A stretch of 64,000 nt of DNA from Epiperipatus broadwayi (GCA_028023455.1 JAQFVV010000006.1:11904001-11968000); one strand, 5' to 3'; positions 1,309-58,275 are shown, counted from the first letter of the stretch. Made by a program: numbers and translations. The notes: a model not told the origin generated them from the sequence alone.

Positions 1309-1700
1309 AGGGGATTTGAATCCAGACTTTCAAGCTCCCTTCAATCATCCTTTCCATTTTATTTAACAGACAACACCACGTGAAAAAGATAAATGATCTT
1401 CACTATACATATTTTGCGCTGAACTAGCCCTCATCAGTTGGTCCAGATCATCTCCCACACACATAATCAGTATTTAGTTTATATTAAAATAGCAAATCTT
1501 CAAACTTTAATGGACGGGCATCAATCTTTTTCAACTCTTTGGCTACCCATATCATTGAAAATCTGATGATGGCATGTTCAAAACCTTTGCTGATATTGTT
1601 ATATCCATGTTGATTATAAGTCTTTCTGATCCCCATATGGAAAGATGCATGAGAGGAATGGACAAATCAGGCTGAACCTAATATTTAAATACAAGGTTAG
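1309..1700 (-). mobile_element. Hammerhead repeat family 1, solo copy A
   Basis: Reverse complement reads CCAACTGATGAGGGCTAGTTCAGCGCAAAATATGTATA (core decayed) and ends at the family terminus GAAAGTCTGGATTCAAATCCC. Confidence 0.85.
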
Positions 1701-3934
1701 TATTGCAACAGTACAAATCTCAGGTGATGGCACTCATCATCAACCCCAAATTAATTTAAAATTAATATAAAAATATGTAATCAATATGAGGAGCCTGAGA
1801 GATCAACACAGAATTGACTATATTATAAATTCACCAACATTACATAAAAGTAATCATTTATCATCATGAATGATCAACAAAAATATATTGGTCAATCTTA
1901 TGACTGGATTTGAAATGGGTCTACTATAGACCAGGCTAATTATTTAGCTCTTGCCAGCTTGAGGCAGATGATTTAAACCATAATTTGGATGAACAAACGT
2001 AAAAGTGTTGATCTATTAGAATATATTTAAACATGCTTATCATTATTGTTGTTCTGATCATTTAGTACCTTTAATGTACTGGCCAACTATAAACTTAATT
2101 TCTAATAAATATTAAAGTAAATAAAATATTGCATAGACTTTAAAGGATATCTTTTTTGTGCCAATCCAACTATCAGCATCATCTGGATGTCAACACTAAA
2201 CATAATCCCTTTTTATATAACAGATTGTTGTCACAAATCTAGCTCGGGAACAAAAAGTTCTGAACAAGAGATAACAAACGGGTATTTTAAATGTATTCTA
2301 TGATTGAGTAAATTCACTGGAATAACTATCAATGAAATATCAATTTATTAATAACAAAAATGAAATTAAGATCTATAGCATATGGCTATACATATAAATT
2401 AGGTCTTTGAATTTGATTAATACAAAAAGAAATCCATCATTACATTGTAATTTACAAATATGTTTCAATAGGTTTATATAAGACAAGCTTACAGATGTGC
2501 AGTATAATTAAGAACATATAAAATATTAATTTTAACATGTCTACCTGACACATCTATATAACCACAGACGTAGTATATGGAAATTGTCATGACTGGTTTC
2601 CAAACGGTACCTATGGAAATGTGTTCACACTTACATTTTAATTTGTCAAAATAATGGTCATTAAAAATACGTTTCACAATTCCATGTTAAAAATACATAA
2701 AATTGACACATATAGAAGCACTCGGATGTGCTGTATAATAATTTAAAAATTAACATGTTCAAATTGTCAGACAAAAAAAATTGTTTTTAATAATACATAA
2801 ATGCACACATAAGTGTGTATAAAAATATATAGATAGTATGCATTAAAACGTAATTAGCCTCTTTTATAGTAAAAGTTTTTTTTTAAAAAATATTAACTCT
2901 TGATAGTCCATAAAAGTTTTTCTTTTTTAACTTTCCTTTTGATTAATTATAAATGTCTTTAAATATACTCCAGCAAGTTTTGTTATTCCCTAATCTAGAA
3001 AGATTTTTAGAGTTTTTTAATATACTCTGGAAATGCATCTTAATTATGGTTGAATAAAGTTATTTATAAAAAAATTGTAATTTAAAAAATTACAACTGAC
3101 ATTTTTACTAAAATCATTTAAAATAACTCATCAGCTGTACTATATATATATGATGCAGTACTTTTATCTATGCTCTGCATGTAGTTAAAACAGTTATTCT
3201 TCAGCGACTCTATGTAAGCTGGACCCTTTTAAACAGAAGACTGATTTATTGACATTTTAAGAAAATATAATTCAGGTAACTATTGTCCTTCAATCAGCTC
3301 TATTTAATCTAGAATTTGATAAACTTCCATGTGAATCCAAAATCATTGTGAACTAGTAACATCAGATGGACTTACAATGTCTCTTGCTTTCAGTTACAAC
3401 TTCATGGTTATGCTGTTACTACCTGTAAAAACAAAAACTTCCTCTTGCCAAGCTTTTATGATCATGGTGGGGGGAAAATACAGTAATTAAAAATAAGTTT
3501 TCTCTATCTCGATTGAAAAAAGTTAATGACTTAATTCAACTTAATCCTTTGAAAATCAACTTTTGTGGAATTTTATTAAAATATGTTATGCAAGAATTAA
3601 TTACTAAAATTTGCTAATGAAAATAGATAGTGGAATTTTATAATTATTAGTATATCTATTGTAACATAAAATATGCTTGTTTTAATTTCAAAATAGAATT
3701 AATAAAATATTAATTAGACAGTTTTAAATGTTTACAAAAAAAGAATTTAAATTCAAAATTTTTTTTGCTTAACTGTTATTCCAGTGTAATATAGAAAATA
3801 TCTACAATTTTTTTTTGTCTGTGTTTATTGCTACTTTTCCTTTTAACTTTAAATATATATATGCACACATTACTATATGGTTGAAAGCCATGGGACACAA
3901 TTGTCTTGGTATATAATGTTAAACTAGATATATA

Positions 3935-4630
3935 TTCAGTTTATCTTATACAATCAATACCGATGGTAATATGTGAGATAAATGATCTTCAATATACATA
4001 TTTTATGCTGAACCAGCAGCCATCAGTTTGTATCATCATCTTCCACACTAATGAGTCCTGGTTTAGCATGAAAAATTTATATTGGAGATCATTTATCTTT
4101 TTCGCACATGTATGTGGTTATGTGTATCTGTTGTATAAGATGGAGCAGATTATTGAAAAGGACTCTAAAGTATGGGTTCCAATTTCATCTAGCTTAAGTA
4201 TATATACTATACCTGTATTTAAATATAGATTCAGCCTGAATTCTGCCTGTCCCTGTTCTGTGTATTATATGGACCTAAGGTCCTACATATGAAGGATCAG
4301 ATTGATTTATAGTCAGCATGGGTATGGCAACAATATCAGCAAACAAGGGCTTTGAACATATCAGATTTTCAATGATATGGATAGCTGAAGATGGAGAGGA
4401 TTGAAGCCTGTCCATTGAAGTTTGAAGATTTGCCATCTTAATATAAACTGAGTACTGATTATATATGTGTGTGGGAGATGATGATCTGGACCACATGATG
4501 AATGCTGGTTCAGCAGGCAATACGGATATTGGAAATCATTTTTTTCACATGTACATGGTGATGCATATCTGATATGTAAAATGGAGTGAATGACTGAAGA
4601 GAGCTTGAAAGTGTGGGTTCGAATGCACTC
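3935..4630. mobile_element. Hammerhead family 1 cluster: minus copy B, plus copy C, tandem plus copy D
   Basis: Minus motif at about 3998-4030; plus motifs starting at about 4048 and 4494 (offset about 446). All three are decayed. Confidence 0.85.
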
Positions 4631-4679
4631 AAATTACATCTAGTTCAACTGATACTTCTGCAGATTGAAAGACTATAAC

Positions 4680-5240
4680 AGTTTTTACCATTATATTTAT
4701 TATTTCTATTGTTATATACTAGTATTTCTAAACAATTGATAACGGTTGGATCATTCCTGTTTTGGTGTTGGAGTTTGTAATTATGTTAAAGTATTTAAAG
4801 TTTAGTAGCGTAGAAAGCTTATATACAGTATGTGGGCTGTTTACATCGATATAATCACTTAATTTCCATTCCTTATATATGTGTATTCAAACATTTTTAT
4901 AGATGAAAGGGTCAGTCATAGACACACATGCATAATTGATACTTGTTTGACCAGTACAGTAGTACTATTTGATACTTGTTTGACCAGTACAGTAATACCA
5001 TCTGCACTGAAATGCTGTTTTTATATATTTTTCCATTGTACATTTTGAAGCCGACCATAAATTTTAATTCAAATTCAGGACAGTAATCTTGTGAAATGTC
5101 AATCACATTTTTAAAAATTGATCCAATTTTTATGGAATTACTGTCCTATACTCTGATTAGGTCTAATTTGTTTTCAAGAAGTTTTATATGTAGACAGTCT
5201 TAAGTAGTTTTTAGCCACATACATGAAGTTTCCTGTTCAG
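4680..5240 (-). pseudogene. Penelope-like RT remnant, heavily decayed
   Basis: Minus-strand fragments MYNGKIYKQ, IK*LYRCKQPTY and NCLEILV occur in the order of the PLE RT motifs FNGKxYKQ, WxRYVDD and LPFLDILI. Many stops and frameshifts. Confidence 0.45.
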
Positions 5241-6299
5241 AGATTGTAAACAAACATATTTCATGGAGATATTTGTCTTTTACCAGATGTCTGCTTATAA
5301 AGTTCTGGAATGTGTGGAGAAATTGAAGTTTTAAATATATCTAAAAAATATATGCACATATATTAAATATTGTGGAAATCATTTACTCTTCACACATGCT
5401 ATAAAATGGATACACTCCTGTCAATAAATGTTTAAAAGCACAGGTGGTCCACCTATGCTTACAGCTTGTTCTTTAAGTAAACTAACATTTATTGGCCATG
5501 CTTGATTTAGGCTTGATCTTATTGCTAGCCTGATTTTTAAATTGGTATGTCATTTCCGTAAGTCCAGATTACATATCACTGGGGAAAAGAAAGTTTCTCA
5601 TTTTTAACTGCCTGTGATACTGAACCTTAATACTTGGTAAGTATATAATAATTAATAATATAGCAATTTATGCATGTATTAAAAATTGTGGTAAACTACT
5701 CACACAATATAAAATAGATGCATACTCTCACATCAGTAAATACTTTAACAGAATAGATTGTCCATTTATGATTAATGTATATCTATTACATAGAGCACGA
5801 GTGAGGGGTGATTGATTTCCACACTATTTTATATATATGTGAATTTTAAATATATTTTATATATATGTGGAAATAAGTTATTCTATGTGTTTAACTCATC
5901 TCAAACAGTGATGGCGAAATGCACTGACAGTGAGATTGGGATAGGGGTGATATTTCTGCGCTCATGGGTAGTTGTGATATGACGGAGATGAGTTGAGAGA
6001 TACCGTAATGAAAAACTTGAAAAATATATACTCATGGCACCTGAAAGAGCACTTCGAGATACACTATTTGAAACCCACTGCTCTGAAGTAATACAGATGA
6101 ACTATCATTCTGAAATTCCTGGTTCCCATATTTTTCTGGATTTGGGAATTTTTTGGATTTTAACAAAAAACTCCCATTTTCATCATAAACCCATATTTCA
6201 GATAAAAAATAAACTTAATTTTGCGATCTATAGTTTTACATTTGTAATGATTTTAATGAGCACATGAATAATTTTATGACATATATAACTCCAAGAATA

Positions 6300-8070: not shown

Positions 8071-9232
8071 TTCATTTCAACATTAGAAATATGGTAACAT
8101 TGTATATATTCCTAATTTCTAAATTCGGGTATAAAATGTAAAATATCTGAATACTAAAAATGAACAAAATAACAAATATATTTTATAAAACCGCTTTTAT
8201 TTGACGATTAATGCACCCAAAGCCAAACAATAATTTCTTTTGACCACAAATTGGATTGATGTACTTAAGTTGAAATAAAAGCGGATGGTAGCCTTTAATT
8301 TACGGATACTTTCTGCTTTTATTTCAAGTTAAATATACCAACCCAAATTGATATCAAAAACAAATACTGTTTGGCTTTTGGTGCATTATTCTTGAAATTG
8401 AATAAAAGTTTTTTTTTTATTTATAAAATACTTTATATTATTAAGAATAACCCTTTTATAGTTAACGATAATGAAGAGATTTCTATTGAACGTAAGTCAT
8501 TTTAGTATAATTTAACGTAATGAATTCATTTATTTATTGAGAATAGAGATGATATAGTTGTGACATTACTTGGCAGAGATAACTGGATCATAACCATACT
8601 ATTTTAGAGAATTTCATATATATTTAAATTATCAGTATTATTTCTTCATTTCAACATTAGAAATATGGTAACATTGTATATATTCCTAATTTCTAAATTC
8701 GGGTATAAAATGTAAAATATCTGAATACTAAAAATGAACAAAATAACAAATATATTTTATAAAACCGCTTTTATTTAATTTGACGATTAATGCACCCAAA
8801 GCCAAACAATAATTTCTTTTGACCACAAATTGGATTGATGTACTTAAGTTGAAATAAAAGCGGATGGCAGCCTTTAATTTACGGATACTTTCTGCTTTTA
8901 TTTCAAGTTAAATATAGCAACCCAAATTGATATCAAAAACAAATACTGTTTGGCTTTTGGTGCATTATTCTTGAAATTGAATAAAAGTTTTTTTTTTATT
9001 TATAAAATACTTTATATTATTAAGAATAACCCTTTTATAGTTAACGATAATGAAGAGATTTCTATTGAACGTAAGTCATTTTAGTATAATTTGTTTAACG
9101 TAATGAATTCATTTATTTATTGAGAATAGAGATGATATAGTTGTGACATTACTTGGCAGAGATAACTGGATCATAACCATACTATTTTAGAGACTTTCAT
9201 ATATATTTAAATTATCAGTATTATTTCTTTCA
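8071..9232. repeat. ~574-bp near-identical tandem duplication
   Basis: TTCATTTCAACATTAGAAATATGG starts at 8071 and 8645; the units differ by only a few substitutions and small indels. Confidence 0.95.
8195..8407. mobile_element. Palindromic MITE (second copy at ~8770-8990 inside the duplication)
   Basis: Arms TAATGCACCCAAAGCCAAACA / TGTTTGGCTTTTGGTGCATTA, with inner arms AAGTTGAAATAAAAGC / GCTTTTATTTCAAGTT. Related to 52160-52540. Confidence 0.7.
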
Positions 9233-9708: not shown

Positions 9709-9720
9709 TAATCTCCAATA

Positions 9721-13657: not shown

Positions 13658-14240
13658 TATATTAATGATTTTTATTCGTCATTCATTAGACTAGAGATTA
13701 TCCAATAATAAGTAATATTTTTGTAGTGTAATTTTTACGACACCACTTTCATGCATGAACTGGTTTCGATCTGCTTTTAGCAACTTGTGGAGAAATGTAG
13801 TCAAAAACGTATGACCAAAGACAGGTGAAAATGATCTATGATCCCTAAGGTGCACATTTCATGCTGAATTGGCTCAGACTACAATCTCATAATATCTTTG
13901 TCATTGTTTAGTGTATATATATATATAGCAAATTATTACAGTTTATTTGATAAGTGTCAAATGTATTGCCCTCACAACTTTGACAGAAATCACTTAATGA
14001 AAGTATATTAATGATTTTTATTAGTCATTCAATAGACTAGAGATTATCCAATAGTGAATAATATTTCTGAAGTGTAATTTTCACTACCCCACTATCACGG
14101 TATGCATTTTGGGGATTGTAGGTCTTTTCCACATGTCTTTGGTCATATGTTTATGATTACATCCTTTTACAAGGTGTTAAAAGTGGATAAAAATCAGTTC
14201 CAACCTCGTGTGAGTGTAGTGTAGTGAAAATTACACTGGA
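13658..14240. repeat. Composite direct + inverted repeat element
   Basis: 13658-13745 is repeated directly at 14003-14095, and 13723-13840 is an imperfect reverse complement of 14120-14240. Confidence 0.75.
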
Positions 14241-19325: not shown

Positions 19326-19904
19326 GATATTTACAGCATTTTATGTCTCATTTGAATTTGCAAGAGTGCATGTATATGCGTAAGCTTGTTTGGCAACATT
19401 AAATATGACAGGATTTTTATTTTTTGGAAAGAGTGAACTTAAAACTTAGTGAATATTTAAAAGTTTATTTCGTATTTATATTGTCAAGATTCAGTTTCGT
19501 TTTATTGAGTAAACATACGCTCATTGACAGGTCGAGTTATCTTAAAATGTCTAAAAAAACCCTAAACCCTCAGCTGAATTTCATCAGCATGACAGAATCC
19601 ATAAACTCGGAATAAGAAAGACATTTTATCAGAAAAGTTCTAAACTTGGATATTTTTTCGACCATTCATCTTTTCAAAATTGAAGTTTTGGTTTTATTAT
19701 TTAAAACAAAACTTGGCAGGAAAAAAAAATTTTGAAAGGATTGTCAGTCAGTTAAAAGGATATATATTGAATAGAAAATACAGGATACAGAGACGATTTA
19801 GCTACCCACACACTTAACACATTCAGAAAACATAGAGTTATTATATTATAGATAATATGAAAAGGAAAATTAATAATAACAAACATTATTAATAGATATT
19901 TTGT

Positions 19905-20155
19905 GGAGTTGATTGAAGTATGTCCATTAAAGTATGAAGATTGGCTATCTTAATATATATCTGAGCACTTATAGCATATATGTGTAAAGATGATAATCTG
20001 GACCAACTGATGATTGCTGGTTTAGCATGAAATACGAATATTGATGATTATTTATCTTTTCGACATATATGTGTTCAAGTGTATCAGTGTTATGAGATAG
20101 AGTGGAGAGTGGTGGGTAGTGTGAAAGTCTGTGCCCACATACCCTATATATTAAT
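19905..20155 (+). mobile_element. Hammerhead family 1, solo copy E
   Basis: ACCAACTGATGATTGCTGGTTTAGCATGAAATACGAATATTGATG at 20002-20046; same subfamily as the copies at 40.9-42.0 kb. Confidence 0.85.
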
Positions 20156-20624: not shown

Positions 20625-21655
20625 TTACTAGGGTAATAAAAAATATTAACCAACTTCCATTCTTAGATGCTCTTAATTGAAAGAAAGAAGGATGGTTGTT
20701 TATCCCATGGTACATATAGCAAGCGCATACACACTGGGAGATATCCACATTTTTCTTCTCATCACCATCCAGCACAATTATTTTCAGTGGCCAAGATATT
20801 ATCAAATAGAACTAAGAGACTTTCTGATAACAGCCATTTTTTCAAAGTTATCTATGCTACTAAAAAGATTCTTCTTCATAATGGTTTTGATCACAGGATT
20901 ATTAATAGGACTTATTTATATAATAAGAAAAGAGATTTTGATAGATTCAAAAATTAACACAGTTCTGCTATATATATTGGGAGTAACTGATAAAATTGGC
21001 AATGTTTTAAAGAAAAGTAGTATCCATACAGTTTATACTACATTTAAAAATAAATAATAATTTCCACACCCTAAAGAAAAAATTCCTGTCAAACATTGGT
21101 GGTCGAGAGGTCAACACAGCTGCCTTACAAGCAGTTGTCCCGGGTTAGCGGGTTCACTTCCCGGCCGATGCTATGACACATAAAAAAAAAGAAGATAAAA
21201 TTCCTTTGATGTGTCATAGTGTATAATTCCATGTGGAGTTTGTTTACAATCATACATTGACCAGACCAATCACAGAATAAACATAAAAAAAAGAATACAT
21301 TTTGGCAGATAGAGAAAAATCCAATTCATCATTCACACATTAAATTAACTAACCATGATATCAATTCTAATAAAACACATATTCTGGCAAAAATTAAACA
21401 ATATAACCAAAGATTGCTTGGGAATCTATGCAGATTTTTAAAAAGCCTATGGACATAAATGAAAAGTGTGAATTGAAGAAAATTACCAGTATTTGGAAAA
21501 AGCTATTGAAGGATAAAATATTTTTTAAATCTTCTCAACCAATAGAATTTGAGAATGAGGAGAAAATAACAAAGGAAAAAAAATAATGATTTTAAATCTC
21601 ATCACACACATTCTTATGATTTGAGACAGAAGAAACTCTGAGGAAAGTACTTGTT
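20625..21655 (+). pseudogene. Penelope-like element remnant: RT thumb + GIY-YIG endonuclease
   Basis: LPFLD-like start, then YSKRIHTGRYPHFSSHHHPAQLFSVAKILSNR, PKEKIP..SVY.IPCG..SYIDQT and NHDINSNKTHILAK. Frameshifted and interrupted by a SINE. Confidence 0.9.
21088..21190 (+). mobile_element. tRNA-Gly-derived SINE inserted into the PLE ORF
   Basis: tRNA-like head, TATGACACAT plus poly(A); approximate TSD AAGAAAAAATTCCT / AAGATAAAATTCCT. Confidence 0.9.
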
Positions 21656-22690: not shown

Positions 22691-24483
22691 ATTTTTATTT
22701 ATTTACAATTCTGATAAATGATAACATTTTCAAGTAGACCTCATCAAGTCTTTTAAATCTCATTCACTGTAATAATATAAACTCTACTTGAGAATCAAAC
22801 TCAGGATTTTATTAAAAAAAAATTCTTTTGTGTTTTTTTGGTGCAGCATCACTAATCATGTACTTACTTCTGGGAAAGGCAAATTTTTTATCTGTTAGAA
22901 TTCTAAAACCACTAAACATCACGTGATCACCACTCTTTATGCTTACACAAGCCGTTCACACAGAGGTTAAATTCTCATATATATTGCTTATAACACTTCT
23001 TTCATATAGACTTCAATGTAGCAGTCTTCATCAGAGCTCTAATCTTCATCTCTGCTTTAATTAAAATTTTCCATACAGTAGTCCCACTGAGTGCAAGCCA
23101 GGGTAAGCAATGAATGTGAGAAGGTTTGTATATAAAAACACAGAGAGATTTAGTTCTGCCAAGATCTAGCCTTCCCCTCATTCATTCCACCACCAGCAGT
23201 TTTTTCATTGCTCCCTAGAGCCATCTGCTGTACGTTTGATAATCAATGCATACCTGATGATACAATGAAACAATATATCCATCTCCTGACCGATTTCTGG
23301 CTTCAGTCTTCATCAGTAAATATTAGGAATTAAAATTGGAGCTAGTGCATTTATGGATCAAATAGCTGGCTTTTTAAAACCATAAAGTTTTTAATTTCAG
23401 GTCATTATTTTGAATAGCTTAAAGAAGTAAAATGCGACTTCTCATTATGTAAATGCAAAAGTCCCAGCCATGAATTATAGTCTTCAGAGGTAAACACCAA
23501 GTTCAAATTTATTCTTTGGATAGATATAATAGATCATCTGGTATCGACTGGTTATTCAAATTAGAATAGATGTCTTTTGAGCAGAGTAAAGGGAACTGTT
23601 TGTGGAAAAACAGAGTAAGCTAAGAGAGTGATGTAGAGTAGAACAAAGAGAACTGCTCTTGGGAGCATATGTGGATTTTGGGAAAAAATAATCTTCCTCA
23701 CATTTGAAAGTAGACAATTTATATTACAAGAATTTTTTTTTTACTCACGGGAAAACAGATCAATTTCTGGTTAGACCAATACACATTCTAGAAGCTTCCA
23801 CCCTATTTTGATTTCTTTCTGTCAAAGTATACAACACAATGAATTGGTAGATGTCTACTCATGTCCGTGAGTTATTAATAATTTAATAACTAGACTGATA
23901 AACATTGAGCTATGTTTAAGGCTGATGATGGGCTGATATTTGTGCGTAATAAAACTGAAATCTTATGTCTTAGATTATTGTAATTTGTGGATTCACCACA
24001 TTTCTGCTTCACTGATTTTTGACTAAAGGAACTGGAATGTATACGCTTCTTAAAATTAACTTTATTATAATGGGTGATGACAACTAATGAATTCAATCAT
24101 GGTGATTGGGTCAGCGCAAAACTGTTTATTGAAGTCCTATAAAATGTATGATATAATTAGTGTATATCATTGTCCTTTCCCTTAACTTTTGGTATATCCC
24201 AATCTACAGGTATACTCTTTTATGTGATATTGCATCTTTGTTTTTTTTAAAACATCATTTGCAGGCATATGAAGCACTCTGTCTTAAGACAGGGTGAGTA
24301 ACTAGAATTTAGTCATCATCAGTAATTACTTACGTTATTGCTCACCACCTTTTTAAAAGCATCTGACTTTGAGAGCAACAACTTCATATCATCGGGATGT
24401 ATCATTTGTACCAATATAGTATTTTAATAATTAATATTTGAATACAAGCATAATTCAAGTACTTGGAGTTTAGATGTAGTTCA

Positions 24484-24780
24484 GGATATTTGAACACAGA
24501 CTTTCAAGCTACCTTCAATCATCTACTCTTTCTCATACAACCACATATATGTGAAAAAAATAAAATTGCTATCCTAATATAAACTGAGTACTGATTATGT
24601 ATATGTGTGAGAGATGATGATCTGGACCAACTGATGATTGTTGGTTCAGCACAAAATACATATATTGGAGACCATTTATCTTTTTCACATGTGTGTGGTC
24701 ATGTGTATCTGTTGTATGAGATAGAGTGGATAGCTGAAGATAGCTTGAAAGTCTGTGTTCAAATCCTCTCGATTATATTT
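24484..24780. mobile_element. Hammerhead family 1 inverted pair (minus stub + plus copy F)
   Basis: Minus terminus at 24484-24555; plus copy ACCAACTGATGATTGTTGGTTCAGCACAAAATACATATATTGG ending GTTCAAATCCT. Confidence 0.85.
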
Positions 24781-26103: not shown

Positions 26104-27123
26104 GGATATCTAATATAATAATCAATCTAAATAAAATTGAAATACACAACCAATTATATTTACAATTATTTAATTATCAACCCGATTTTCGTCTCTTATT
26201 GAGACCTTTTCAAGATAAAGTTTTATACATCACATGACCTATTAATTACATTTACTCCACTTATTGGACATTACTCTACCTTCAACAATACAATTAACAT
26301 TATACATATAAATATATTTTGTGTCATTTGTTTATATAATATTTAAATACTGTATATTGTCCATACTAAAGGGATTTGAACTCAGACTTTCAAACTCCTC
26401 ACAACAATCTAATTCATCTTATACAACTGATACACATGCCACATACATGTGAGAAAGATAAATAATATCCAATATACGTATTTTGTGCTGAACCAACACT
26501 CACCAGTTGGTATCACCATCTTCCACACATATATACAATCATATATATACACACATATATAATATCTATATACACAATCATTTATATACACACATATATA
26601 CAATAATATTGGCATCAACAAGAGCTTTGACATTTCATTCTTAGATTTTCAATGATATGGATGGCAGAAGAATTGAAGAGTGGAGACGATTGAAGCTTAT
26701 CCATAAAATTTGAAGATTTGTTATCTGAATATAAACCGAGCATGGATTATATATATGCACGGGAAATGGTGATGTGGACCACTGATAAGTGCTGATTCTG
26801 CATGAAATACATATATTGAAGATCATTTATCTTTCTCACATGTATGTGGTCATGTGTATCAGTTGGTATAAGATGGAGTGGATAGTTGTACAGAGCTTGA
26901 AAGTCTGAGTTCAAGTCCCTTATACTTACATTTATTTATGTGTACAATGTTAATTGTATTCCTGAAAGTAGAATAATGTCCAGTAGGTAAAGTAATTATA
27001 ATTGATAGGTCATGTGATGTATACCTTGAAAAGGTCATAATAAGAGATGAAAGCCAGATAAAATTGTAAATATAATTGTTTGTTCAATTTTATTTAGATT
27101 GATTATTATATTAAGTATATCTA
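26104..27123. mobile_element. ~1-kb imperfect palindrome: family 1 pair G/H plus inverted outer arms with a second hammerhead-like motif
   Basis: Family 1 minus copy at 26365-26530 and plus copy at 26600-26920. The outer segments 26104-26310 and 26930-27123 are also reverse complements. Confidence 0.85.
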
Positions 27124-28130: not shown

Positions 28131-29633
28131 GTCTGTCTGGCAAATCACTTGTTAGTAATAAAATACAAATAGACAACACAGGTTAGTAATTACACAATGA
28201 GTATTATTTTCTACACTTCTTCAGGTGTTGCTAATCTAAGGCAATATTCACATATGTAATCTAAGGCAAAACGCTCTAACCAACTGAAATATCCTGTCAA
28301 CAGATAGTAGAAATTTCATATGTTTATATATGAGGGTTGATTCAAATCCTCATGAATCCTTCAAAGTTTTTCTTCTTCTTCAAGAGCAAGGCTAATTAGA
28401 GTCTGTTTTTTTTTAAAAAAATTTTTTTTCTAAGAGTAAGGTTAATTAGAGGCTTCCATACATTGAATAAGAGTGGAGAATACTACTACCCGAAAACCTG
28501 TGTTGTCTATTTATATGCTATTATTAATATGTTAATTATTCTGTAATTCAAGGGGGAAATGATTTGAGAAGAAAGACAAAAGAGGCCTGCTTTATCGCAA
28601 TAGACAGCAACGTCATTAACAGAAAGGAAACGTGTTATTCTGTTTCCAGGAAATGGAATATTTGAACTTTGCATAGATTTGCATAACATTAGACAATCAG
28701 TTACTTCACAAAGAGCTATGGTTATGAGAACCATGACTCTCAAAAGTGCTCAGTCTATGGTTTAATAAGATATTAAATAGTAGCTTTGTGTTCATGAGTT
28801 TATAGCGCTAGTATTGAATTACATAATATTTACCAAATACGCAAAGTTTAAAATTAAGTTCGTATTATAACATGTTAATAATTGTATTTGAAAAAGTTTA
28901 AATATGAATAAAATTTTTCTATATATTCAACATTTACTGATAGATGATGGAAACCAACATATTATCACATCTAATCTTATAAAAATTACTACATGTGCTT
29001 AATGAGTGATCACGTGTATATTTACGATTTGTGCAATTTTTTGGTTGTATGTTTTAGTTATAGTTTTTCCTATCAACTAAATGTCCTATTTCATATTTTT
29101 TCAAAAACTCTGGTACATAGATTGCTTTTTAAAGTAATTTAAATTTATAATGTGCAATTTTTCCACCGCACCAGAGCAAGCTTTCTAAGGCAATTACTTT
29201 AATTGTTTATAATTAAAGCACTTAGAGTTTCATGGAAAGCATTTTTTGATTTTGTTTATGTTGTTTCTATTTTTGGAGGTAAATAGTAATAAAATAATTA
29301 AGAATTATTAGAAAAATATCAACCAAAAATAAATATAGTCCAAAATTGCTTTTAGTTATTCTAAACTGTTTTTATTCTTATTTTATTTAAAAAAAAACTC
29401 TGTTTCTTCGCCATTCTTTTAAAACAAGAATTAATATTTAGACATTACTATTCTAATTAATTATTTATTTATGTATTTTGTAAATATTTGAAATCCAGGC
29501 ACTCTTCACATACCTAGAGCCCAATTGTAAATAGAGGGGATTTGAACTCAGACTTTCAAGCACCCTTCAACTATCCACTCTATCTCATACCACTGATATA
29601 CATGACCACACATGTAGAAAAAATAAATAATCA

Positions 29634-29675
29634 CCAATATACGTATTTCATGCTGAACCAGCACTCATCAGTTGG
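29634..29675 (-). ncRNA. Minimal type I hammerhead ribozyme, copy I (core intact)
   Basis: CCAA-CUGAUGA-GUGCU-gguuc-AGCAU-GAAA-UACGUA-UA-UUGG. All core nucleotides are present; G-U closes stem II; palindrome AUACGUAU. Confidence 0.88.
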
Positions 29676-30080
29676 CCCAGAGTGTCATCTCCCATATATA
29701 TATATATATATAATCAGCGCTTAGTTTATATTAGGATAGCAAGCCTTCATATTTTAACGGACAGGCTTTACTCTATTCCAAACTCCAACTCTTCAGCCAT
29801 CCATATCAGTGAAATCTGATGGAAAGCTCAAATCCATGCTGATGCCAATATTATTGCCATGCCCATATTGACCTCAAATCACTCTGAACTCTCATATATA
29901 GGACCTTATTCATTTAAATACATAGAAGGGGGATGAGCAGGATGCAGGCTTAATGTGTAAATATTTGAAATACAGACATTTTTCACATACCTAGAGCCCA
30001 ATTGTAAATATAGGGATTTGAACTCAGACTTTCGCTATCTTAAAACTGAGCACTGATTATATATATATGTGGGAGATAAT

Positions 30081-30138
30081 AATCTGGACCAACTGATGAG
30101 TGCTGGTTTAGCATGAAATATGTATATTGGTGATTATT
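30081..30138 (+). ncRNA. Minimal type I hammerhead ribozyme, copy K (core intact)
   Basis: AAUAAUC-ugg-ACCAA-CUGAUGA-GUGCU-gguuu-AGCAU-GAAA-UAUGUA-UA-UUGGU-GAUUAUU, with an extended bulged stem I. Confidence 0.85.
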
Positions 30139-30281
30139 TATCTTTTCTACATGTGTGTGGTCATGTATATCAGTGGTATGAGATAAGAGTGCTTGAAAGT
30201 CTGAGTTCAAATCCTCTATATTTTTGTATTTTGTTTAAATTTCAGACTTTGGACATAAATTTACTTAAAGTTTTTGCTAAT

Positions 30282-34080: not shown

Positions 34081-34879
34081 TTTCTTTTCTGAGTGGTAAC
34101 TTGTTTTGTTGTTGAATGTTGTAACATTTACCTTTCATTATTAATATATGTATGGTGTATTCACATTAAAAATATGATCTGTTATAACTCGCCAATACCT
34201 TAATATTCTTTGCAAACTTAAAGGTTGGCAGTAAAAATGAAGCTATTGGGAACACTCTGGAATTTGAGGGCTCAAACATAAACATAGAAGAAATTAAATT
34301 TCATTAGACTTTGTAAATTAATAAATTATGTCTATATTTGGTACTGATTACTATGTTTAAACAAAAGGCCTCATGTTATAGGGGCTGAACATCTACTGGC
34401 TAGTGAAATTTGGAACTTTCAGGTTACAAAGGATTTTTTTAAACATTTCTCCTATATACAACCACCTATCTCTCTTATTGATCAGTAATTGGGTATCTGT
34501 CTAGTCTTAGCAAAAGAGTAAGATAAAATGGAAAATTGTAAACACCTACCATCCAGAAAATGGCAATGCTAGTGAATAATGACATTTGCCTGCTGGAGAG
34601 ATCTTTATCCTTGCAGTCACTATCTAAAGATAATAGATATTTTAAGTATGACATGGGGGGGGGGCAATGAAAATGAATTTTCTAAATATGACTGTTAGAA
34701 AGTGATTAACATTTTCATTATTTACTATACTTGATATTTAACCCAGTGGAGGATGATGGGCTTTGTATTGAGACTCAATTGGTCATTTCTGGCATTCAAA
34801 CATCACATGACCTCCTAATCAATTTAATCATTCAATTAACCTGTTCATTCAGTATACTGAATGTTTACTATAGTAAATA

Positions 34880-35465
34880 AAGGAATTTGAACTGAGGGTT
34901 TTATAAGTCAATATTCATCCTCCATCCCAAACAATCGATTTAACATGCCTACACACATGTGAAAACAATAAATGATTCCCAATGTACATATTTTGTGCAG
35001 AATTAGCACTTATCAGTTGGCCAGATCATAATTGTCCACACATATATACAATCAGTGCTTGCATTATATTAAGATAGCAATTCCTTAAATGGGGACATAA
35101 TAGTCTGATGTGAGAATTGATTGCCGTATTGTCTACATGAGTATAAATACAATATCAAATCCACCAAGGACTTTGAGCATTCCATCATTGGTTTTCAATA
35201 AAATGGATAGTTGAATTGTTGAAAAGGTGAAAAGATTAAAACCTGTTCATTAAAGTTTAAGGAATTGCTATCTTAATATAAGATGAGCACTGAGGGCATA
35301 TATGCATGGGAGATTATGATCTGGCCCAACTAATGAGTGCTGATTCTGCACAAAATATATGTATTGGGGATCATTTATCTTTTTCACATGTGTGAGGTGT
35401 GTGTATGACTGTTTGAGATGAAATGGAGGATGAATATAAACAAAATTCTAAGATCAAACCCCTCT
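34880..35465. mobile_element. Hammerhead family 1 inverted pair L/M (CCCAA/UUGGG subfamily)
   Basis: Minus copy 34880-35080 and plus copy 35130-35465 share the subfamily marker GCAATTCCTTAAA. Confidence 0.88.
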
Positions 35466-35539
35466 AGTAATCATTCACTTATTTTTTAATTAATTGCTAC
35501 AAATAGTGACTGCAATACCATATGAACTATGAATAATAG

Positions 35540-40856: not shown

Positions 40857-40886
40857 CAATATATATATATATATATATATATATTG

Positions 40887-40921
<35 letters not shown>
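40857..40921. repeat. (TA)n microsatellite abutting a family 1 terminus
   Basis: Direct sequence. Confidence 0.95.
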
Positions 40922-40927
<6 letters not shown>

Positions 40928-41021
40928 TATGAGCACAGACTTTCACACAACCTACCACTCTCCACTCTATCTCATAACTCTGATGCACTTGAACACATAT
41001 ATGTTGAAAATATAAATAATC

Positions 41022-41065
41022 ACCAATATACGTATTTCATGCTAAACCAGCAATCATCAGTTGGT
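41022..41065 (-). ncRNA. Minimal type I hammerhead, copy N
   Basis: ACCAA-CUGAUGA-UUGCU-gguuu-AGCAU-GAAA-UACGUA-UA-UUGGU. Core intact; stem II closing pair is U-U. Confidence 0.75.
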
Positions 41066-41870
41066 CCAGATTATCATCTCTACACATATATGCAACAAGT
41101 GCTCAGATATATATTAAGATAGCCAATCTTCATACTTTAATGGACAGGCTTCAATCCACTCCACACTCCAACTCTTCAACTGGCCAATTAATTCGTTTAT
41201 GGAAGCCCCCTCCCCGACACTTTTATTTCTAGTTAAATATACCCACCAAAATTATGGTTGAAGTAAACATTTTATTTTGCTTTTTACTGCTTTACTTTTC
41301 AAATTAAATAAAATAATTTTTTAAAAAATGTTTTATATTCAAAATTGTTATCTTAGGAAAAGGTTTATTCGGCATCTTTATTTTACCAACAGTAGCTGAG
41401 CGCACTTTTCTAAAGTGTTGGTGGAGAGAAATGAGATCCATCTACAGGCAATGTTTGATCAAATTCACTAGGCGTTGGGGGAAGACTAAATGATCTTTTA
41501 CCGTCACATTAGTAATATATAGGGTATATGAGCACATCTATATATTACATATATAAACACAGGTATATAATAAGCCTGTGTGTTTCCGTTATTACATAGT
41601 AGAGATGTCTGCCCATCCCTTGTATATGTATTGGATGGATTATGTCCTGTACATGAGGGGTCAGATTGACCTTAGGTCAACATGGGTGTGACAAGAATCT
41701 CGGCCTCAGGGTGGCCTTTGAGCATTCCATCATCAGATTTTCAATCGGATGGACGGTTGAAGAGTTGGAGTATGGAGTAGATTGAAGCCTGTCCATTAAA
41801 GTATGAGTATTGGCTATCTTAATATATATCTGAGCACTTATAGCATATATGTGTAGAGATGGTAATCTTG

Positions 41871-41914
41871 ACCAACTGATGATTACTGGTTTAGCATGAA
41901 ATACGTATATTGGT
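41871..41914 (+). ncRNA. Minimal type I hammerhead, copy O
   Basis: ACCAA-CUGAUGA-UUACU-gguuu-AGCAU-GAAA-UACGUA-UA-UUGGU. Core intact; stem II weakened. Confidence 0.7.
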
Positions 41915-42786
41915 GATTATTTATCTTTTCAACATATGTGTGTTCAAGTGTATCAGTGTTATGAGATAGTGTGAAGAGTAGTGGGTCTTGTGAAAGTCTG
42001 TACTCATACACCCTATATATTACATATATAAACACAGGTATATAATAAGCCTGTGTGTTTCAGTCATCACATTAGGTGATTTTTCTGGAGAAGAGCTTTC
42101 CGAATTTTAACATTTAAAAATTCATTTTATAACTTGCTTTAAGTTTCTCTAATTTTTCCATACCTATTTCTCTCTAATATTTTCCATAATATGAGAATTA
42201 TTAAAGTCAGGACTTAATGCAGTTTTTGAAGTATTAGAGAAATATTCTTCAGCCTATAAACGAAAAGGAGTAACACCATCTAAACCCAAATTCTAATAGG
42301 TTCTCATTAACCGAGCAGTTGCAAAATTTTCTACTGCTTTTAATATACTGGTAAATAAGTGATACTCTGGTTGATATATCACTGTGATATTAAGACAAAG
42401 TGTGAAATGGAAGGTTCGGAATTTTGGAATTTGATTATTTGATGTCCAAATAGATTACCTTCGACTTCAGATGAAAGTTTGAGAAATAGAAGTTCAAAAT
42501 TGTCACTTATCCTCTCTGGTCATCTAAACAATGTTTTTGTGCTCTGGAGAGAAATTCATCCACTTTTTTGTTCTATTTCTGTAGGAAGAATCTGGCTTCT
42601 CTAGCCGAAAGCACTCTCAGCTGCTATTAGCAAAATAAAGATACAGAATAAATCTCTTCCTTAGCCAGCATTGAAACATTTTAGACAACTAATTATAAAA
42701 TGTATCATATATATATTATTTCTATTCTCTTATTAGAATTAAGCAAATAACCAAATATGGGGGGGAGGACTTTTACTTAATAGCAT

Positions 42787-50984: not shown

Positions 50985-51825
50985 CATGCAATTAGACAGG
51001 GCTTGGACTCAGACTTTCAAGTGCCCTAGAACTATCCGTCCATCTTATATAACTGATGCACATGACCACATGTGCAAAAGATAAATGATCTCCCAATATA
51101 CATATTTTGTGTTGAACCAGCACTCATCAGTTGGTCCAGATCATTATCTCCCACACACATCTATAATCAGTGCCCAGTTTATATTAAGATAGCAAATATT
51201 CAAACTTTAATAGACAGGCTTCAATCCTCTCCACTTTCCAACTCTTCAGCCATTCATAAGTTTGAAAATCTGATGATGGAGTGATCAAAGTCCTTGCTGG
51301 TGCCAATATTATCATCACAACCATGTTGATATTAAGTAACTCTGATACCTCATATGTAGAACCTCAATATCCATTTATATACATAGAAGAGGGAACAGAA
51401 TATATTCAGCTTGTATTATGCCATTCCCTCTTTTGGATATTTAAATGAACTTATTAAGATGCTACTTGTGAGGGGTCAGAGTAACAAAGTCAACATGAGT
51501 ATGACAATAAGATTGGCATCAAGGGTTTTGAGTCTTCCATAATCAGATATTCAATGATTTGGATGGTTGAAGAATTGGAGTGTGAAGAGGATTGAAGCCT
51601 GGGCATTAAAGTTTGAAGATTTTCTATCTTGATATAAACTGAGCACTGATTATATATCTGTGGGAGATGATCTGGAATAACTGATGAGAGCTGGTTCAGT
51701 ATGCAATATGTATATTGAAGATCATTTATCTTTTTCACATGTATGTGGCCATGTGAATAAGTTGTATAAGATGGATTGGGTAGCTGTAGAGAGCTTGAAA
51801 GTCTGAGTTCAAGCCCTGTTTAATT
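50985..51825. mobile_element. Hammerhead family 1 inverted pair P/Q
   Basis: Minus copy 50990-51420 and plus copy 51490-51820. Both outer ends share CATG.AATTA.ACAGGGCTTG.ACTCAGAC. Confidence 0.9.
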
Positions 51826-52039
51826 ACATGTATTATCATGTACATATACTAGTTATGATATATACATAAAGAGTATTTTAACTTATAGCAGAAATATCTA
51901 GTGATATATCTATATATATCAACTATAAGTGTCCAGAAAATTTAAAGTACAATATAGTTTTATATTTTCCATTTACTGTGCCAATACTAATGACTTAAAA
52001 ATAATAGGTTTCTTTTTTTAAATATTGAATGCTTTTATT

Positions 52040-52148: not shown

Positions 52149-52159
52149 GTTGAATGCTT

Positions 52160-52540
52160 TTATTGGTTGTGCATTAAAAAGCAATAAATAAATAAATTGT
52201 TTCTTCAACCACAATTGGGATTTTTAGATGTAACTTGAAATAAAAATATGTAAGGGGTGTGTGTGTGTGTGTCCAGCAATTAATTAAGTCAATCCCTACT
52301 TTTTATAATAAGCGATTGACTTAATTATTTTCTGGACCCCCACATGCTTTTATTTCAAGTACTTGAAATAAAGCATGGGAGGGGGGGGTCCAAAAATTAA
52401 TTCAAGTCAATTACTGACTTAATTAATTTTTGGAGCCCCCCCCCCCACCATGCTTTTATTTAAACTTAAATCTAAAACTCCAACTGGGATTGAAAGAACA
52501 ATTTTTTTTTTTTGATTTTTAATGCACAGTCAATAAAATC
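52160..52540. mobile_element. Long palindromic MITE/foldback
   Basis: TTTTATTGGTTGTGCATTAAAAA ... TTTTTAATGCACAGTCAATAAAA, with nested inner inverted modules; related to 8195-8407. Confidence 0.75.
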
Positions 52541-53761: not shown

Positions 53762-54107
<346 letters not shown>

Positions 54108-54673
54108 TTAAGGGAAAATAGATGTGAAGCATTATGGATTCTCCTTTCTTGGAGTCAGAAATCTATTAGCAATATGCCCAGAGAAACTTGTTACATACCT
54201 TACCTCCCTTTCCATTCCCCATCCTGTTTCCCCATATTCTTCTCTATCCTGATGTGGTGAAATAAAAAGAAGCAAGCTTATGTTGTACATGGCTAAATAA
54301 TTTTAATTTGAGCATCATAAACATAATGACACTATGATTGAAATAAGTTATACTCTTGATGCAACATTCTATTAATTTCATTACAAACCAATTTGAATAA
54401 TATCGCATGAACATCTCCATTAATTTTAAGTTTGCTGTAATAAATATCTACAATCCATATAGAATTTCTGGATGATAGGTGAAAGTAGATTCGTCTTTTA
54501 TATGCATCAAGGATTCTTTGATTCCAAATGACTCTGCATTAATATAGATAGTCTTGGTTATCTATTGCTCTATTTATTACAAATCATTAGTGTGGTATAA
54601 TTTGATATTTACATATTTTGTTTTTGGTTTATTAATAAGATTATAAAAATGAAGCCAAAATGAATAAGCTATA

Positions 54674-55511
54674 CAAGCGGGTACCCAGAAGTAACTGGAC
54701 ATTTATAATAATAATTGTTTATTTATTTTTAAGTCATAAATTTAATCACTTTACATTTGATGCAATACACAGGTTTAAACATGTTTTTATTTTTCAAAGT
54801 AGTCCAGATGCCTTTTAACACTTGTGGCACTTTTTCTTCACCACTTCTAAGTTCGCCAAAAAAGGAGACATTTTTTTTCATTCAAGAGATTAAAAAAATT
54901 GTATGAAGTAAGACTGAGCAAATATGACTGATAGATAAGCTAAGTTTTGCTGAACTTAATTAAAAAAAGTTTTACATTTAAGGCTTTGAGAGATGTCACT
55001 TTGTCAGGGTGGAATTTGCCCTCTTTCCTTTGCCACAAAATGGGATGTTTACATTTTACAGCATCACTTAAATGTTTCAGAACATGAAGATAAAATGCTT
55101 GACTGATATAAAGTAAATCTGAGAGAAAAATGCCATTTGCATAAAAAAATCATGTTTTGACTGACATGGTGAATTTAACATTTCAATTAAAACACTCATA
55201 AACTTGTGTTGTTCCAAGATCAGCTTGCTTGTAATCTGTTTCAAACATTACAACTATTTTCCTTGCCATTTTCTATAAATGAAAACAGAATTACACATTA
55301 TTTGAACTTTTGAGTCATTATAAAAATTGATAAATATGTCAAATGCACTTTATAAAAAATGTGCTCCATGTTGCCACATTTTCACATACTGCTGTCCTCT
55401 GACAGAGTGATGGAGAAGGGTTCCTGCAAGAAGTGTATTACAGTAGAAGCTTATACCACAGCAGATGCAAACACCAGAGAATGATTTTGGTTATTTTTGA
55501 GTCTCCCCTTG
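54674..55511 (-). mobile_element. Internally deleted mariner (Tc1/mariner) element
   Basis: TA|CAAGCGGGTACCCAGAAGTAAC ... GTTATTTTTGAGTCTCCCCTTG|TA imperfect TIRs with TA TSD. A minus-strand remnant resembles the WxKCxxxxGDYFEK C-terminus. Confidence 0.85.
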
Positions 55512-55520
55512 TATAGTAAT

Positions 55521-55619
55521 TTCCTTTTTTTAATGTATCAAATGCATTGACCAGGAAATGAACCCAGGCCAGCTGCTTGGAACACAGCTATGCTAACCAC
55601 TAGGCCATCAATGCTTGAC
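55521..55619 (-). mobile_element. tRNA-Gly(TCC)-derived SINE
   Basis: GCATTGATGGCCTAGTGGTTAGCATAGCTGTGTTCCAAGCAGCTGGCCTGGGTTCATTTCCTGGTCAATGCA; TSD ATAGTAAT. Confidence 0.88.
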
Positions 55620-56864
55620 ACATAGTAATGGCCTTTGATTTAAAGTTTATTGTAATAAATCTCATTGCCTAGTCTACTATCCATATATAGATAGTGGGTG
55701 GAATGCAAAAATAAATTCATTTTTCATCTGAAATGAGTTTACTTTGATATTAAAGGGCATTGCAATAATATAATTGGTATTTTAGTAGGAAAGGTATTAC
55801 TCCAATTATTATATGTCATTAGTTCTGTGTAAATACACACATACACATAAAACTGCCTTGTAATCAGATTGAAGATACTCTGTGTTGATAAGTGATGGCT
55901 GATTTCAAATGAGAAAAATCAGTTTTATTATTTTAATAATAATGGGTAGTAATGGAGTTGGAGAAAGTTTTGAAATAATTATTTATTAGACTACTTTCAA
56001 AACAGGTTGTAATTGCCTATTTAATGAGGTTTATTTAAACTTTAATAAATTAAAACTCTCAGTTAGTTGCAGTCCGAATGAAAAACTTTAATATCTATAT
56101 TAACTTCTTAGCAAAGAGATACATTTGATATCACTTGTATATATAAAAGGTTGCTACCTTCATGTGATTTACATACACACATATATACTATTTCATTAGT
56201 CATTAAAAATTAATTTCTTTCATATTAAAAGAAGTTAAATTACACAATGTATGTTAATATGTTTAAAAAAATCTTCAACAACCTTTGAGTTAGATGACTG
56301 TCAGTTTGAGAATATGGGTCAATTTACACACCTTGGTAGCTTTTTAGGCAGAAAGATGAACTTGAATGTTCTAGGATGCTGTAATGTTAGCATCATCATC
56401 ACCAGAAACTACAGTCTCAGTGCTCATATGTGTATAATCTTCCTTCAAACAACTCCCCAGTTTTACCTCTTCCAAGGCTACTGAGAAATATAAGATACTT
56501 CCACAAAATTCTTTAATATCTGTCCATATTACTTTAAGCATTTATCATTTATTTGTGAGAACTATGTAATAATGAAATGTGGAAATTTTAATTTGCCATA
56601 TATGACAAATATTTGTAGCTTCATCTCAATAAATTTCTTTCAACATGGATGGACTCGAGTCTCAATTTAATGCAACATAAGTGTTTCTAAATATAAATTC
56701 AACAAAATTTTTATTGGATTCACTATTTTTAAAACTTCTTCACTGAAAACATTTAATTTCATTTAATTCTCAACAACTTCTTCAAATGCCAAGGTTCATT
56801 TTATGAGTTAAAAATAATTAATTCATCATAGTGATCTTATGATTTCAACTGATTCAATTTACAA

Positions 56865-57110
56865 TTTATTCAGTGTACTTTAAACACTATTTTATTATAC
56901 ATATATGAATACACAATCTTACATTTCGACTGTCCTGCAGTCTTCTTCAGAGCCACTTTTACTTAAATTTTTTAAAAGTAAAAAAAAATAAAAAATTAAG
57001 GTAAAAGTGGCTCTGAAGAAGACTGCAAGACAGTCAAAATGTAAGATTGTGTATGCATATATGTACAATAAAAGATTTTTGCTAAAAAGAGTTTAAGTGC
57101 AGTGAGTAAA
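56865..57110. mobile_element. Hammerhead-like family 3 inverted pair
   Basis: Minus copy CUGAAGA-A-GACUG-cagga-CAGUC-GAAA-UGUA (56918-56952) and plus copy 57011-57046 (G12 lost), on ~110-bp inverted arms. Confidence 0.75.
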
Positions 57111-57664
57111 TTTCATTTATTTAAATGGATTCAAAATATGTCTAAATTTAAGATATGACTATTAACTAGTTGTAAATTGAATGATTTCACGATCAGTAAT
57201 ATTTAACAGAAATAGTAGTCTTACTCAGTGAAGAATTTATTAGCTTCTCCTTCCCAAATCAAATGCTTTAGATTTTCCTATATAATTAGAAAAATAGGTT
57301 GAAGATAAGAGTGGCCACTCTTATCTTTATAAAGTAGAATCTTGCTTTAAGATTTGTAGTGGTCTCTCTTGTAATAAAATTAAGCACACAAGGCACATCT
57401 ACTAAGATTATAGCCTTATTTAAGTATAAGACATAATAACAAAATAAAGAAAATAATGAATTTGGTAATATTTCTGATTCAATTTAGTTTAAGTAAAAGG
57501 CATGGATTCCTTTCCCATCATTGTAACATAAAGGCATTGGATTTTTTAAATTTAAGAACACTTTACAAGATTCTAAATAAACAATAACAAAAACCGAAGA
57601 CTAACCTATACATGCTTCAACTTGTTAAATGTAAGACTATTGATTCTATTATTTATGTAAACAG

Positions 57665-58275
57665 AGAGGTTTAAACTTAGGATTTTTCAGTCTATATTCA
57701 TCCTTTACTCTATCTCAAACAACTGATACACATAATCACATATATGTGAAAAAGATAGATCATCCCCATGTATTTCATGCAGAACTAGTGCTCATCAGTT
57801 GGACCAGATTATAATCTCCCATACATATATACAATCAATGCTCAGCTTATATTAAGATAGCAATTCCTTAAACTTTAATGGACAGGCTTCAATCTTCTCA
57901 CCCTTCCAACTATTCAACCATCCATTTCATTAAAAATCTGACAATGGACACTCAAAGCCCTTCTAGGATTTGATATTGTAGTCATACCCATGTAGACATT
58001 ATTTCAATCTACATTTCAATGAAATGGTTGGTTGAATAGTTGGAAGGTGAAAATATTGAAGCCCATCCATTAAAGTTTAAGGAATTGCTATGTTAATATA
58101 AACCAAGCACTGACTGTATATATGCATGGGACATTATGATCTGGCCCAACTGATGAGTGTTGGTTCTGCACCAAATATGTATATTAGGGAGCATCTATTG
58201 GCATGTATGTGGTCATGTATATCAGTTGTTTGAGATGGAGCGAACAAATATAGACTGAAAATCGTAAAGTCAAAT
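57665..58275. mobile_element. Hammerhead family 1 inverted pair R/S
   Basis: Minus copy 57680-57995 and plus copy 58010-58265; same subfamily as the 34.9-kb pair. Confidence 0.88.

Follow-up and report, generated by a model that had tools for sequence, protein, structure and literature searches.

A very high-copy non-coding repeat with a minimal hammerhead motif and Penelope-type insertion anatomy in the genome of Epiperipatus broadwayi

Herein we describe a repeat family found in a 64,000-nucleotide (nt) stretch of the Epiperipatus broadwayi genome (GCA_028023455.1, JAQFVV010000006.1, positions 11904001-11968000; ~29% GC, from a 5.6-Gb genome), which is referred to below as the window and whose coordinates are counted from its first letter. 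The family is built on a 471-position unit that carries a minimal type I hammerhead ribozyme motif, and we interpret it, with a probability of roughly 0.85, as a very high-copy, non-coding and non-autonomous retroelement with a hammerhead motif of the Penelope type, mobilised in trans by the machinery of Penelope-like elements (PLEs). The copies are retro-insertions of the kind made by target-primed reverse transcription (TPRT) and display PLE-specific anatomy, and because this anatomy matches the published features of PLEs, a non-autonomous PLE derivative, close to the animal retrozymes, is the best reading of the family. A first-pass annotation of the window had proposed a retrozyme-like element or non-autonomous PLE derivative, a reading that is now well supported by constant 3' ends, 5' truncation and partial tandems, as well as by head-to-head double insertions enclosed in one target-site duplication (TSD) of variable length and by a one-sided tail of ~40 nt.

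The repeat was delimited with a profile built from 25 copies (471 positions, with the hammerhead core beginning at profile position 281), and a search with this unit profile (nhmmer) retrieved 21 pieces in the window, which together cover 5.85 kb or ~9% of its length. These pieces group into 11 insertion events, eight of which are inverted pairs in minus-then-plus order. When the motif region of each copy was defined as profile positions 276-319 and mapped to window coordinates, 19 of the 21 pieces were seen to cover it, comprising 18 motif copies and one copy at 13844-13873(-) from which the core is deleted; the motif was thereby recovered at all 18 positions claimed for it in the first-pass annotation. 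The repeat length of ~445-480 nt given there agrees with the unit (38% GC), which spans 471 profile positions and measures 477 nt in the copy at 29479-29955, and the absence of a conserved open reading frame (ORF) was borne out as well, since no stop-free frame in a dimerised profile consensus exceeds 83 codons (the longest lies antisense), and the unit is therefore regarded as non-coding. Like a retrozyme monomer, the 471-nt unit is thus short, AT-rich and non-coding and bears a type I hammerhead. Within the window the 12-mer CTGATGAGTGCT occurs 24 times with at most 2 mismatches, compared to 3.5 occurrences expected from shuffles. Genome-wide, the 33-nt motif with at most 2 mismatches gives 60,332 matches vs 0 for a reversed control, and a 20-mer from close to the unit's 3' terminus has 14,640 exact matches.

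Insertion anatomy was resolved in a pool of 102 arms, taken from the window and from 34 non-redundant genome loci that were obtained by searching either with the motif or with the 3'-proximal 20-mer. Within this pool, 38 pairs are arranged head-to-head, against 2 tail-to-tail adjacencies. The outer (3') ends are constant, lying at profile 419-437 (~430) or at 470 when a tail is present, whereas the inner (5') ends are scattered across the whole unit from profile 2 to 435, with 13 of the 102 arms starting within the first 25 profile positions. Constant outer ends combined with variable inner ends imply 5' truncation with the 3' end facing outward, and the strand that reads outward is the hammerhead strand in every pair. 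Eighteen pairs have the tail of ~40 nt (profile ~434-470) at exactly one outer end, 10 pairs lack it altogether and none carries it twice, at both outer ends. Arms that exceed one unit pass directly from profile 470 into profile 1, as exemplified in the window by 29484-30034 and 4046-4643 (the unit junction within the left arm of the pair at 29484..30223 falls at 29951-29961), and the longest arm in the pool, at locus L069, reaches 2.2 units. A single TSD surrounds the whole pair, with clear cases of 18, 17, 16, 15, 15, 14, 14, 13, 10 and 10 bp, and the mean longest match between the flanks is 9.7, compared to 6.9 in the control. Since one direct repeat flanks the whole pair, each pair represents a single integration event.

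Previous analyses of PLE insertions have shown strong 5' truncation and partial tandems that form pseudo-long terminal repeats (pLTRs) (PMC8557442, Craig et al. 2021), together with an inverted 5'-truncated copy alongside and a tail of 30-40 bp at one end only (PMC8557442). The present family displays a constant 3' end with variable 5' truncation, partial tandems with an adjacent inverted truncated copy, a one-sided tail and one TSD per complex insertion, all of which are features of PLEs. The opposite-strand arrangement has its published counterpart too, in the 'dual min-HHRs' that lie ~100-700 bp apart on opposite strands in PLE repeats (PMC4209133, Cervera & de la Pena 2014). The insertion events of the window and their hammerhead regions are as follows.

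1299..1665 (-): solo copy, 5'-truncated, profile 13-429 (nhmmer E 2.9e-74)
1399-1442 (-): hammerhead region of the solo copy at 1299..1665, GAAA lost
3934..4643 (mixed strands): one complex insertion in three pieces
3934-4051 (-): inverted fragment of the insertion at 3934..4643
4046-4219 plus 4232-4643 (+): 1.3-unit partial tandem of the same insertion
3988-4031(-), 4047-4086(+), 4490-4533(+): hammerhead regions of the same insertion, all core-mutated
13807..13960 (-): fragment, profile 187-356, hammerhead core deleted
19903..20149 (+): solo copy, 5'-truncated, profile 177-423
20002-20045 (+): hammerhead region of the copy at 19903..20149, core bases retained, G10.1 changed to U
24435..24773: head-to-head pair, arms 24435-24564(-), profile 325-469, with tail, and 24563-24773(+), profile 213-423
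24626-24669 (+): hammerhead region of the pair at 24435..24773, G12 changed to A
26369..26934: head-to-head pair, arms 26369-26541(-) and 26600-26934(+)
26468-26511(-), 26778-26820(+): hammerhead regions of the pair at 26369..26934, both mutated
29484..30223: head-to-head pair with a 10-bp TSD, TGTATTTTGT
29484-30034 (-): left arm of the pair at 29484..30223, a 1.15-unit partial tandem, tail-bearing
30031-30223 (+): right arm of the same pair
29633-29676(-), 30088-30131(+): hammerhead regions of the same pair, a G10.1-U11.1 wobble in each
34872..35467: head-to-head pair of the C2.5-G1.5 subfamily, arms 34872-35088(-) and 35112-35467(+)
34978-35020(-), 35325-35368(+): hammerhead regions of the pair at 34872..35467, both core-mutated
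40912..42062: two-armed insertion, arms 40912-41209(-), adjoining a (TA)n microsatellite, and 41608-42062(+), with tail
~41538-41597: partial tandem before the arm 41608-42062, a 60-nt copy of its own 3' end/tail
41022-41065(-), 41871-41914(+): hammerhead regions of the insertion at 40912..42062
50987..51832: head-to-head pair of near-full-length units, 50987-51396(-), profile 18-428, and 51407-51832(+), profile 2-432
51091-51135(-), 51676-51719(+): hammerhead regions of the pair at 50987..51832, GAAA mutated in both
57656..58287: head-to-head pair, arms 57656-58010(-) and 58007-58287(+)
57765-57803(-), 58145-58188(+): hammerhead regions of the pair at 57656..58287, both mutated

The ancestral motif reads CCAA-CUGAUGA-GUGCU-GGUUC-AGCAC-GAAA-UACGUAU-A^UUGG, with the caret at the predicted cleavage site, which falls after AUA at profile 314/315. 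The full conserved core (C3 U4 G5 A6 N7 G8 A9, G12 A13 A14, A15.1-U16.1 and H17=A) is found intact in the profile consensus, as it is in the 59 genomic copies of the perfect 42-mer. The topology is type I, with an open helix I of 4-5 bp; helix II consists of 5 bp, G10.1-C11.1 being the closing pair, and a 5-nt loop; and helix III, of 2 bp, bears a 4-nt palindromic loop, helix and loop together forming the palindrome AUACGUAU. In a dimer, this palindrome could form an 8-bp intermolecular helix, and PLE hammerheads, like other metazoan ones of type I, have been reported with this architecture (PMC4209133, PMC7229834). The first-pass description of a minimal type I hammerhead with palindromic helix III is therefore upheld, with all core bases, the type I topology and the palindrome confirmed in the consensus. 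Genome-wide, the helix I pair 2.5/1.5 covaries (A..U 13,294, C..G 608, A..G 348, C..U 111; odds ratio ~209), and this covariation is evidence of selection on the fold in master copies. The C2.5-G1.5 subfamily that it delimits also has an A11.5-to-U change in helix II.

All copies in the window are old, neutrally decaying relics. Identity between the arms of one insertion is 72-95% (median 86%), and that of the window copies to the profile consensus is 69-96%. Decay has nearly always struck the two CpGs of the motif, either as C11.1 to U or as G12 to A, the latter altering a conserved core position. The ancestral core is retained in none of the window copies, and the four that keep all core bases under lenient criteria each have C11.1 changed to U. 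A strict generic descriptor of minimal hammerheads, applied to both strands of the whole window, passes only 29634-29675(-) and 30089-30130(+), which are the two arms of the single insertion at 29484..30223 and have C11.1 changed to U in both. Across the genome, the 59 copies of the perfect 42-mer compare with the 60,332 near matches of the 33-mer. Position by position, the motif is not clearly better conserved than other blocks of the unit, as the neutral decay of dead copies would lead one to expect.

Several results weigh against the interpretation given above, the first set of which concerns the ribozyme itself. The covariation at pair 2.5/1.5 amounts to one compensatory event, the one that defines the C-G subfamily, with the other pairs varying by decay alone, and a large subfamily has an A-A mismatch at this same pair. 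The scan with Rfam hammerhead models that the first-pass annotation had suggested came back empty: there was no match at the gathering threshold in the whole window, and none even at E<=10 when a window copy, locus L058 and three perfect genomic copies were searched. PLE minimal hammerheads were themselves originally detected by a relaxed RNAmotif descriptor and not by covariance models (PMC4209133). A competing hairpin, CUGGACCA/UGGUUCAG, is predicted at -12.2 kcal/mol vs -4.7 kcal/mol for the monomeric hammerhead (ViennaRNA), and in the fold prediction for a homodimer the active conformation is not favoured either. This hairpin has 8-11 bp, covers profile 272-299 (for example 30078-30105(+) in the window) and is predicted to tie up helix I by its 5' strand and helix II by its 3' strand; both substitutions that define the C2.5-G1.5 subfamily weaken it. 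Its role could be that of a conformational switch, or it may be no more than noise. In addition, in vitro cleavage by the published minimal hammerheads of PLEs is poor (PMC4209133).

A second set concerns the place of the cut and the transcripts. The predicted cut never coincides with an insertion 3' end, these ends being placed ~115 or 155 nt further downstream, and in the 102-arm pool the 5' ends show no peak at 314/315. The 5' ends do form weak clusters at ~1-20, ~95, ~235 and ~322-337, the last of which includes positions 8-12 nt beyond the predicted cut on its downstream side. Only 5 of the 102 arms contain more than one direct hammerhead, and at least two would be needed for unit-length RNA to arise by double self-cleavage. 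The source organism contributed one run with Logan contigs of the family, and two other organisms contributed further such runs, the RNA status of these runs being guessed; contig depth across the unit mirrors that of a DNA run, subject to the same guess for the other runs, and the sole back-joint spanning the unit was seen in the DNA run. In runs X7 and X8 (organisms C and D), thousands of contigs are at least 85% like the unit (query, positions 470-900 of locus L071), and the hammerhead family or close relatives of it seem common to related species.

The third set concerns the autonomous partner. PLE endonuclease genes as such are abundant in the genome, a point in favour of the interpretation: it holds 10,242 GIY-YIG candidates, of which 150 were scored, every one of them above the Pfam cut-off. 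The unit lies in the 3' untranslated region of 0 of 30 GIY-YIG loci (blastn, tblastn), and no autonomous PLE that shares the 3' end of the unit was found among these 30 loci. The window contains no PLE ORF. Its sole reverse transcriptase (RT) remnant, at 59496-60928(-), is LINE-like (LINE, long interspersed nuclear element), with an RVT_1 match at E 6.8e-13 in the ORF at 60500-60928 and a zf-RVT match below the cut-off in the ORF at 59496-60041. At the genome locus L043, a decayed, 5'-truncated fragment of PLE RT (1881-2742(+), 35-42% identical to PLE ORFs at other loci) is separated by 230 nt from a short pair of the hammerhead family in head-to-head arrangement. We judged this fragment to be an independent insertion, and rejected it as the autonomous partner on the grounds that it is an independent, decayed and 5'-truncated copy.

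In the mechanism that we favour for mobilisation by PLEs, the RT and GIY-YIG endonuclease of a PLE, both abundant in this genome and acting in trans, would nick the target with a stagger of 10-18 bp, and synthesis of complementary DNA on the element RNA would be primed from both DNA ends. The true 3' end (profile 470) would be the start of one arm, with the second starting ~40 nt further in, and synthesis would then halt or switch template at variable points, yielding arms that are head-to-head, 5'-truncated and sometimes longer than a unit. By analogy, the predicted hammerhead may act mainly as a dimer through the palindromic helix III, AUACGUAU, cutting after AUA in more-than-unit transcripts.

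How the RNA template is made and read admits a variant to which we attach a small probability, namely that the element is reverse-transcribed from circular or more-than-unit RNA by a telomerase-like internal initiation at a fixed site. Three observations leave this variant open: the 3' ends lie ~115 or 155 nt past the predicted cut and never at it, the arms cross the unit junction seamlessly, and the two arms of one event end at fixed points, ~430 and 470. If initiation at a fixed site were true, tens of thousands of insertions would be the footprint of a PLE RT using circles made by hammerheads, a step in the life cycle of PLEs and retrozymes.

A further alternative holds that the copies are merely 5'-truncated autonomous PLEs, that is, their 3' untranslated region or pLTR, and do not form a dedicated non-coding family. 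PLE copies are indeed mostly 5'-truncated, with the hammerhead behind the endonuclease gene (PMC4209133), and a shared ancestry of the 3' end is possible. However, arms that exceed the unit cycle from profile 470 to 1 and do not run into coding sequence, 13 of the 102 arms start in the first 25 profile positions, the unit is without similarity to PLE proteins, and it lies downstream of none of the 30 PLE endonuclease loci, all of which makes this alternative improbable.

A short interspersed nuclear element (SINE) of tRNA origin would explain a different set of signals in the unit. Under this proposal, RNA polymerase III A and B boxes would lie at profile ~353-415 and mobilisation would be by LINEs, and the unit does contain a T-loop/B-box-like GAGTTCAAATCC and an A-box-like ATCAGTGG ~45 nt apart, within a region (profile 339-427, ending at the short 3' end) that ARAGORN calls 'tRNA-Leu' at its 80% threshold. 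That relaxed setting makes 32 calls in the window, whereas ARAGORN is blank on the unit at default, 95, 90 and 85%; the fold that it draws is poor, and the Rfam tRNA model has no match at E<=10 on unit copies. A tRNA-like 3' module was rejected as unsupported, resting as it did on the ARAGORN -ps80 call with its poor fold and no Rfam tRNA match. The insertions have no A-rich or simple-repeat tail and their anatomy is PLE-type, not LINE-type, which contradicts mobilisation by LINEs, and we regard a SINE origin as highly improbable. Elsewhere in the window, two related tRNA-like sequences at 21093-21172(+) and 55543-55614(-) score 35.0 and 35.4 bits with the Rfam tRNA model, above its gathering score, and in both cases an A-rich stretch follows. 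Probably these are the heads of a tRNA-derived SINE or tRNA pseudogenes, unrelated to the hammerhead unit.

The proposal that the inverted pairs are long terminal inverted repeats (TIRs) of a miniature inverted-repeat transposable element (MITE) or foldback DNA transposon, with the hammerhead-like motif incidental, has a probability close to negligible and was rejected: most copies do stand in inverted pairs whose arms (given as 50-270 nt in the window or as 100-400 nt, and 80-92% complementary) superficially resemble long TIRs and whose hairpins are scored by covariance models of microRNA (miRNA) precursors, but in place of symmetric TIRs and a fixed-length TSD we found truncated, asymmetric arms with constant outer and unequal, variable inner ends, arms that can be solo or in partial tandem, a tail that is one-sided in 18 pairs and two-sided in 0, a TSD of 10-18 bp, and a hammerhead strand that is the strand with the outward 3' end in every pair. 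The first-pass annotation had itself named the TIR of a DNA transposon as the identity that would count against its reading, and this identity, once tested, was set aside because of the variable TSD, the asymmetric arms and the one-sided tail.

Read-through of head-to-head pairs would fold into long hairpins, for example at positions 1764-1950 of locus L058, and both plant and animal miRNA-precursor models score such hairpins (MIR6140, 69 bits, below its gathering score). We rejected these miRNA-precursor matches in the Rfam scans as artefacts of the inverted arms. As a source of small RNAs, the predicted pair hairpins are possible candidates.

Other repeats lie near or between the copies in the window. 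Directly beside the solo copy at 1299-1665, a 191-bp unit is present twice at 846-1231 with 98% identity (TRF score 751) and is a young tandem duplication. Long microsatellites are found at 53764-54107 ((AGAG)n, 86 copies) and 58799-59047 ((TAT)n, 83 copies), and the arm at 40912 adjoins a (TA)n tract at its 3' end; a preference of PLEs for microsatellites has been reported, of which this window offers anecdotal instances only. Inside the insertion at 40912-42062, its two arms are separated by a dispersed repeat of ~330 nt (41210-41537), whose other copies at 8316-8439, 8742-9018 and 52171-52245 are ~71-75% identical and which is probably a nested or neighbouring element.

A repeat that resembles a TIR-bearing DNA transposon has thus been shown to be a Penelope-type retro-insertion. 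The hallmark numbers of PLE integration are clean here (38 head-to-head pairs vs 2 tail-to-tail, a tail in 18 vs 0, and one variable TSD) and come from a family of at least 60,000 copies, which together make this genome a good data set for the mechanism of PLE integration and the role of the hammerhead in it.

When compared with known systems, the motif resembles the minimal hammerheads of PLEs (PMC4209133) in its type I topology, canonical core and short open helix I, in its ancestral G10.1-C11.1 pair and 2-bp helix III with a palindromic loop that permits a dimeric active form, and in its massive dispersal, mainly as single motifs or as opposite-strand pairs a few hundred bp apart. It differs from them in having a helix II of 5 bp, as opposed to the published 6-8 bp, and in residing in a dedicated 471-nt non-coding unit and not behind an RT-endonuclease gene. 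The insertions, in turn, resemble those of PLEs, among them non-autonomous derivatives such as MRC1 of Chlamydomonas (PMC8557442), in their 5' truncation, pseudo-LTR partial tandems, adjacent inverted truncated copy, tail at one end and occasional insertion beside microsatellites, although the tail is slightly longer here (~37-45 nt).

With the metazoan non-LTR retrozymes (PMC7229834; bioRxiv 10.64898/2026.07.22.740005) the family shares a non-coding, AT-rich unit of a few hundred nt with a type I hammerhead, a species-specific sequence and the occurrence of direct-repeat arrangements, and retrozymes have been proposed to derive from, and to depend on, PLEs (PMC7229834; Li, Clavereau & Pollet 2026, bioRxiv 10.64898/2026.07.22.740005). 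Unlike in retrozymes, long tandem arrays are exceptional (a maximum of 2.2 units, with at least two direct ribozymes in 5 of 102 arms), and the usual form is a dispersed head-to-head double insertion, which departs from the textbook retrozyme. Newt satellite 2 and the Schistosoma Sm-alpha element are alike in being short non-coding repeats with a type I hammerhead and a weak helix III that favours dimeric cleavage; they differ in that theirs are canonical hammerheads with loop-loop contacts, set in tandem arrays or SINE-like elements. Minimal hammerheads in PLEs were published in 2014 (PMC4209133), animal retrozymes in 2020 (PMC7229834) and the PLE origin of animal retrozymes in a 2026 preprint (bioRxiv 10.64898/2026.07.22.740005). 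By its anatomy the element belongs with the non-autonomous PLE derivatives that carry minimal type I hammerheads, in overlap with the definition of non-LTR retrozymes, and the family is a new species-specific representative of this published kind of element and not a new class.

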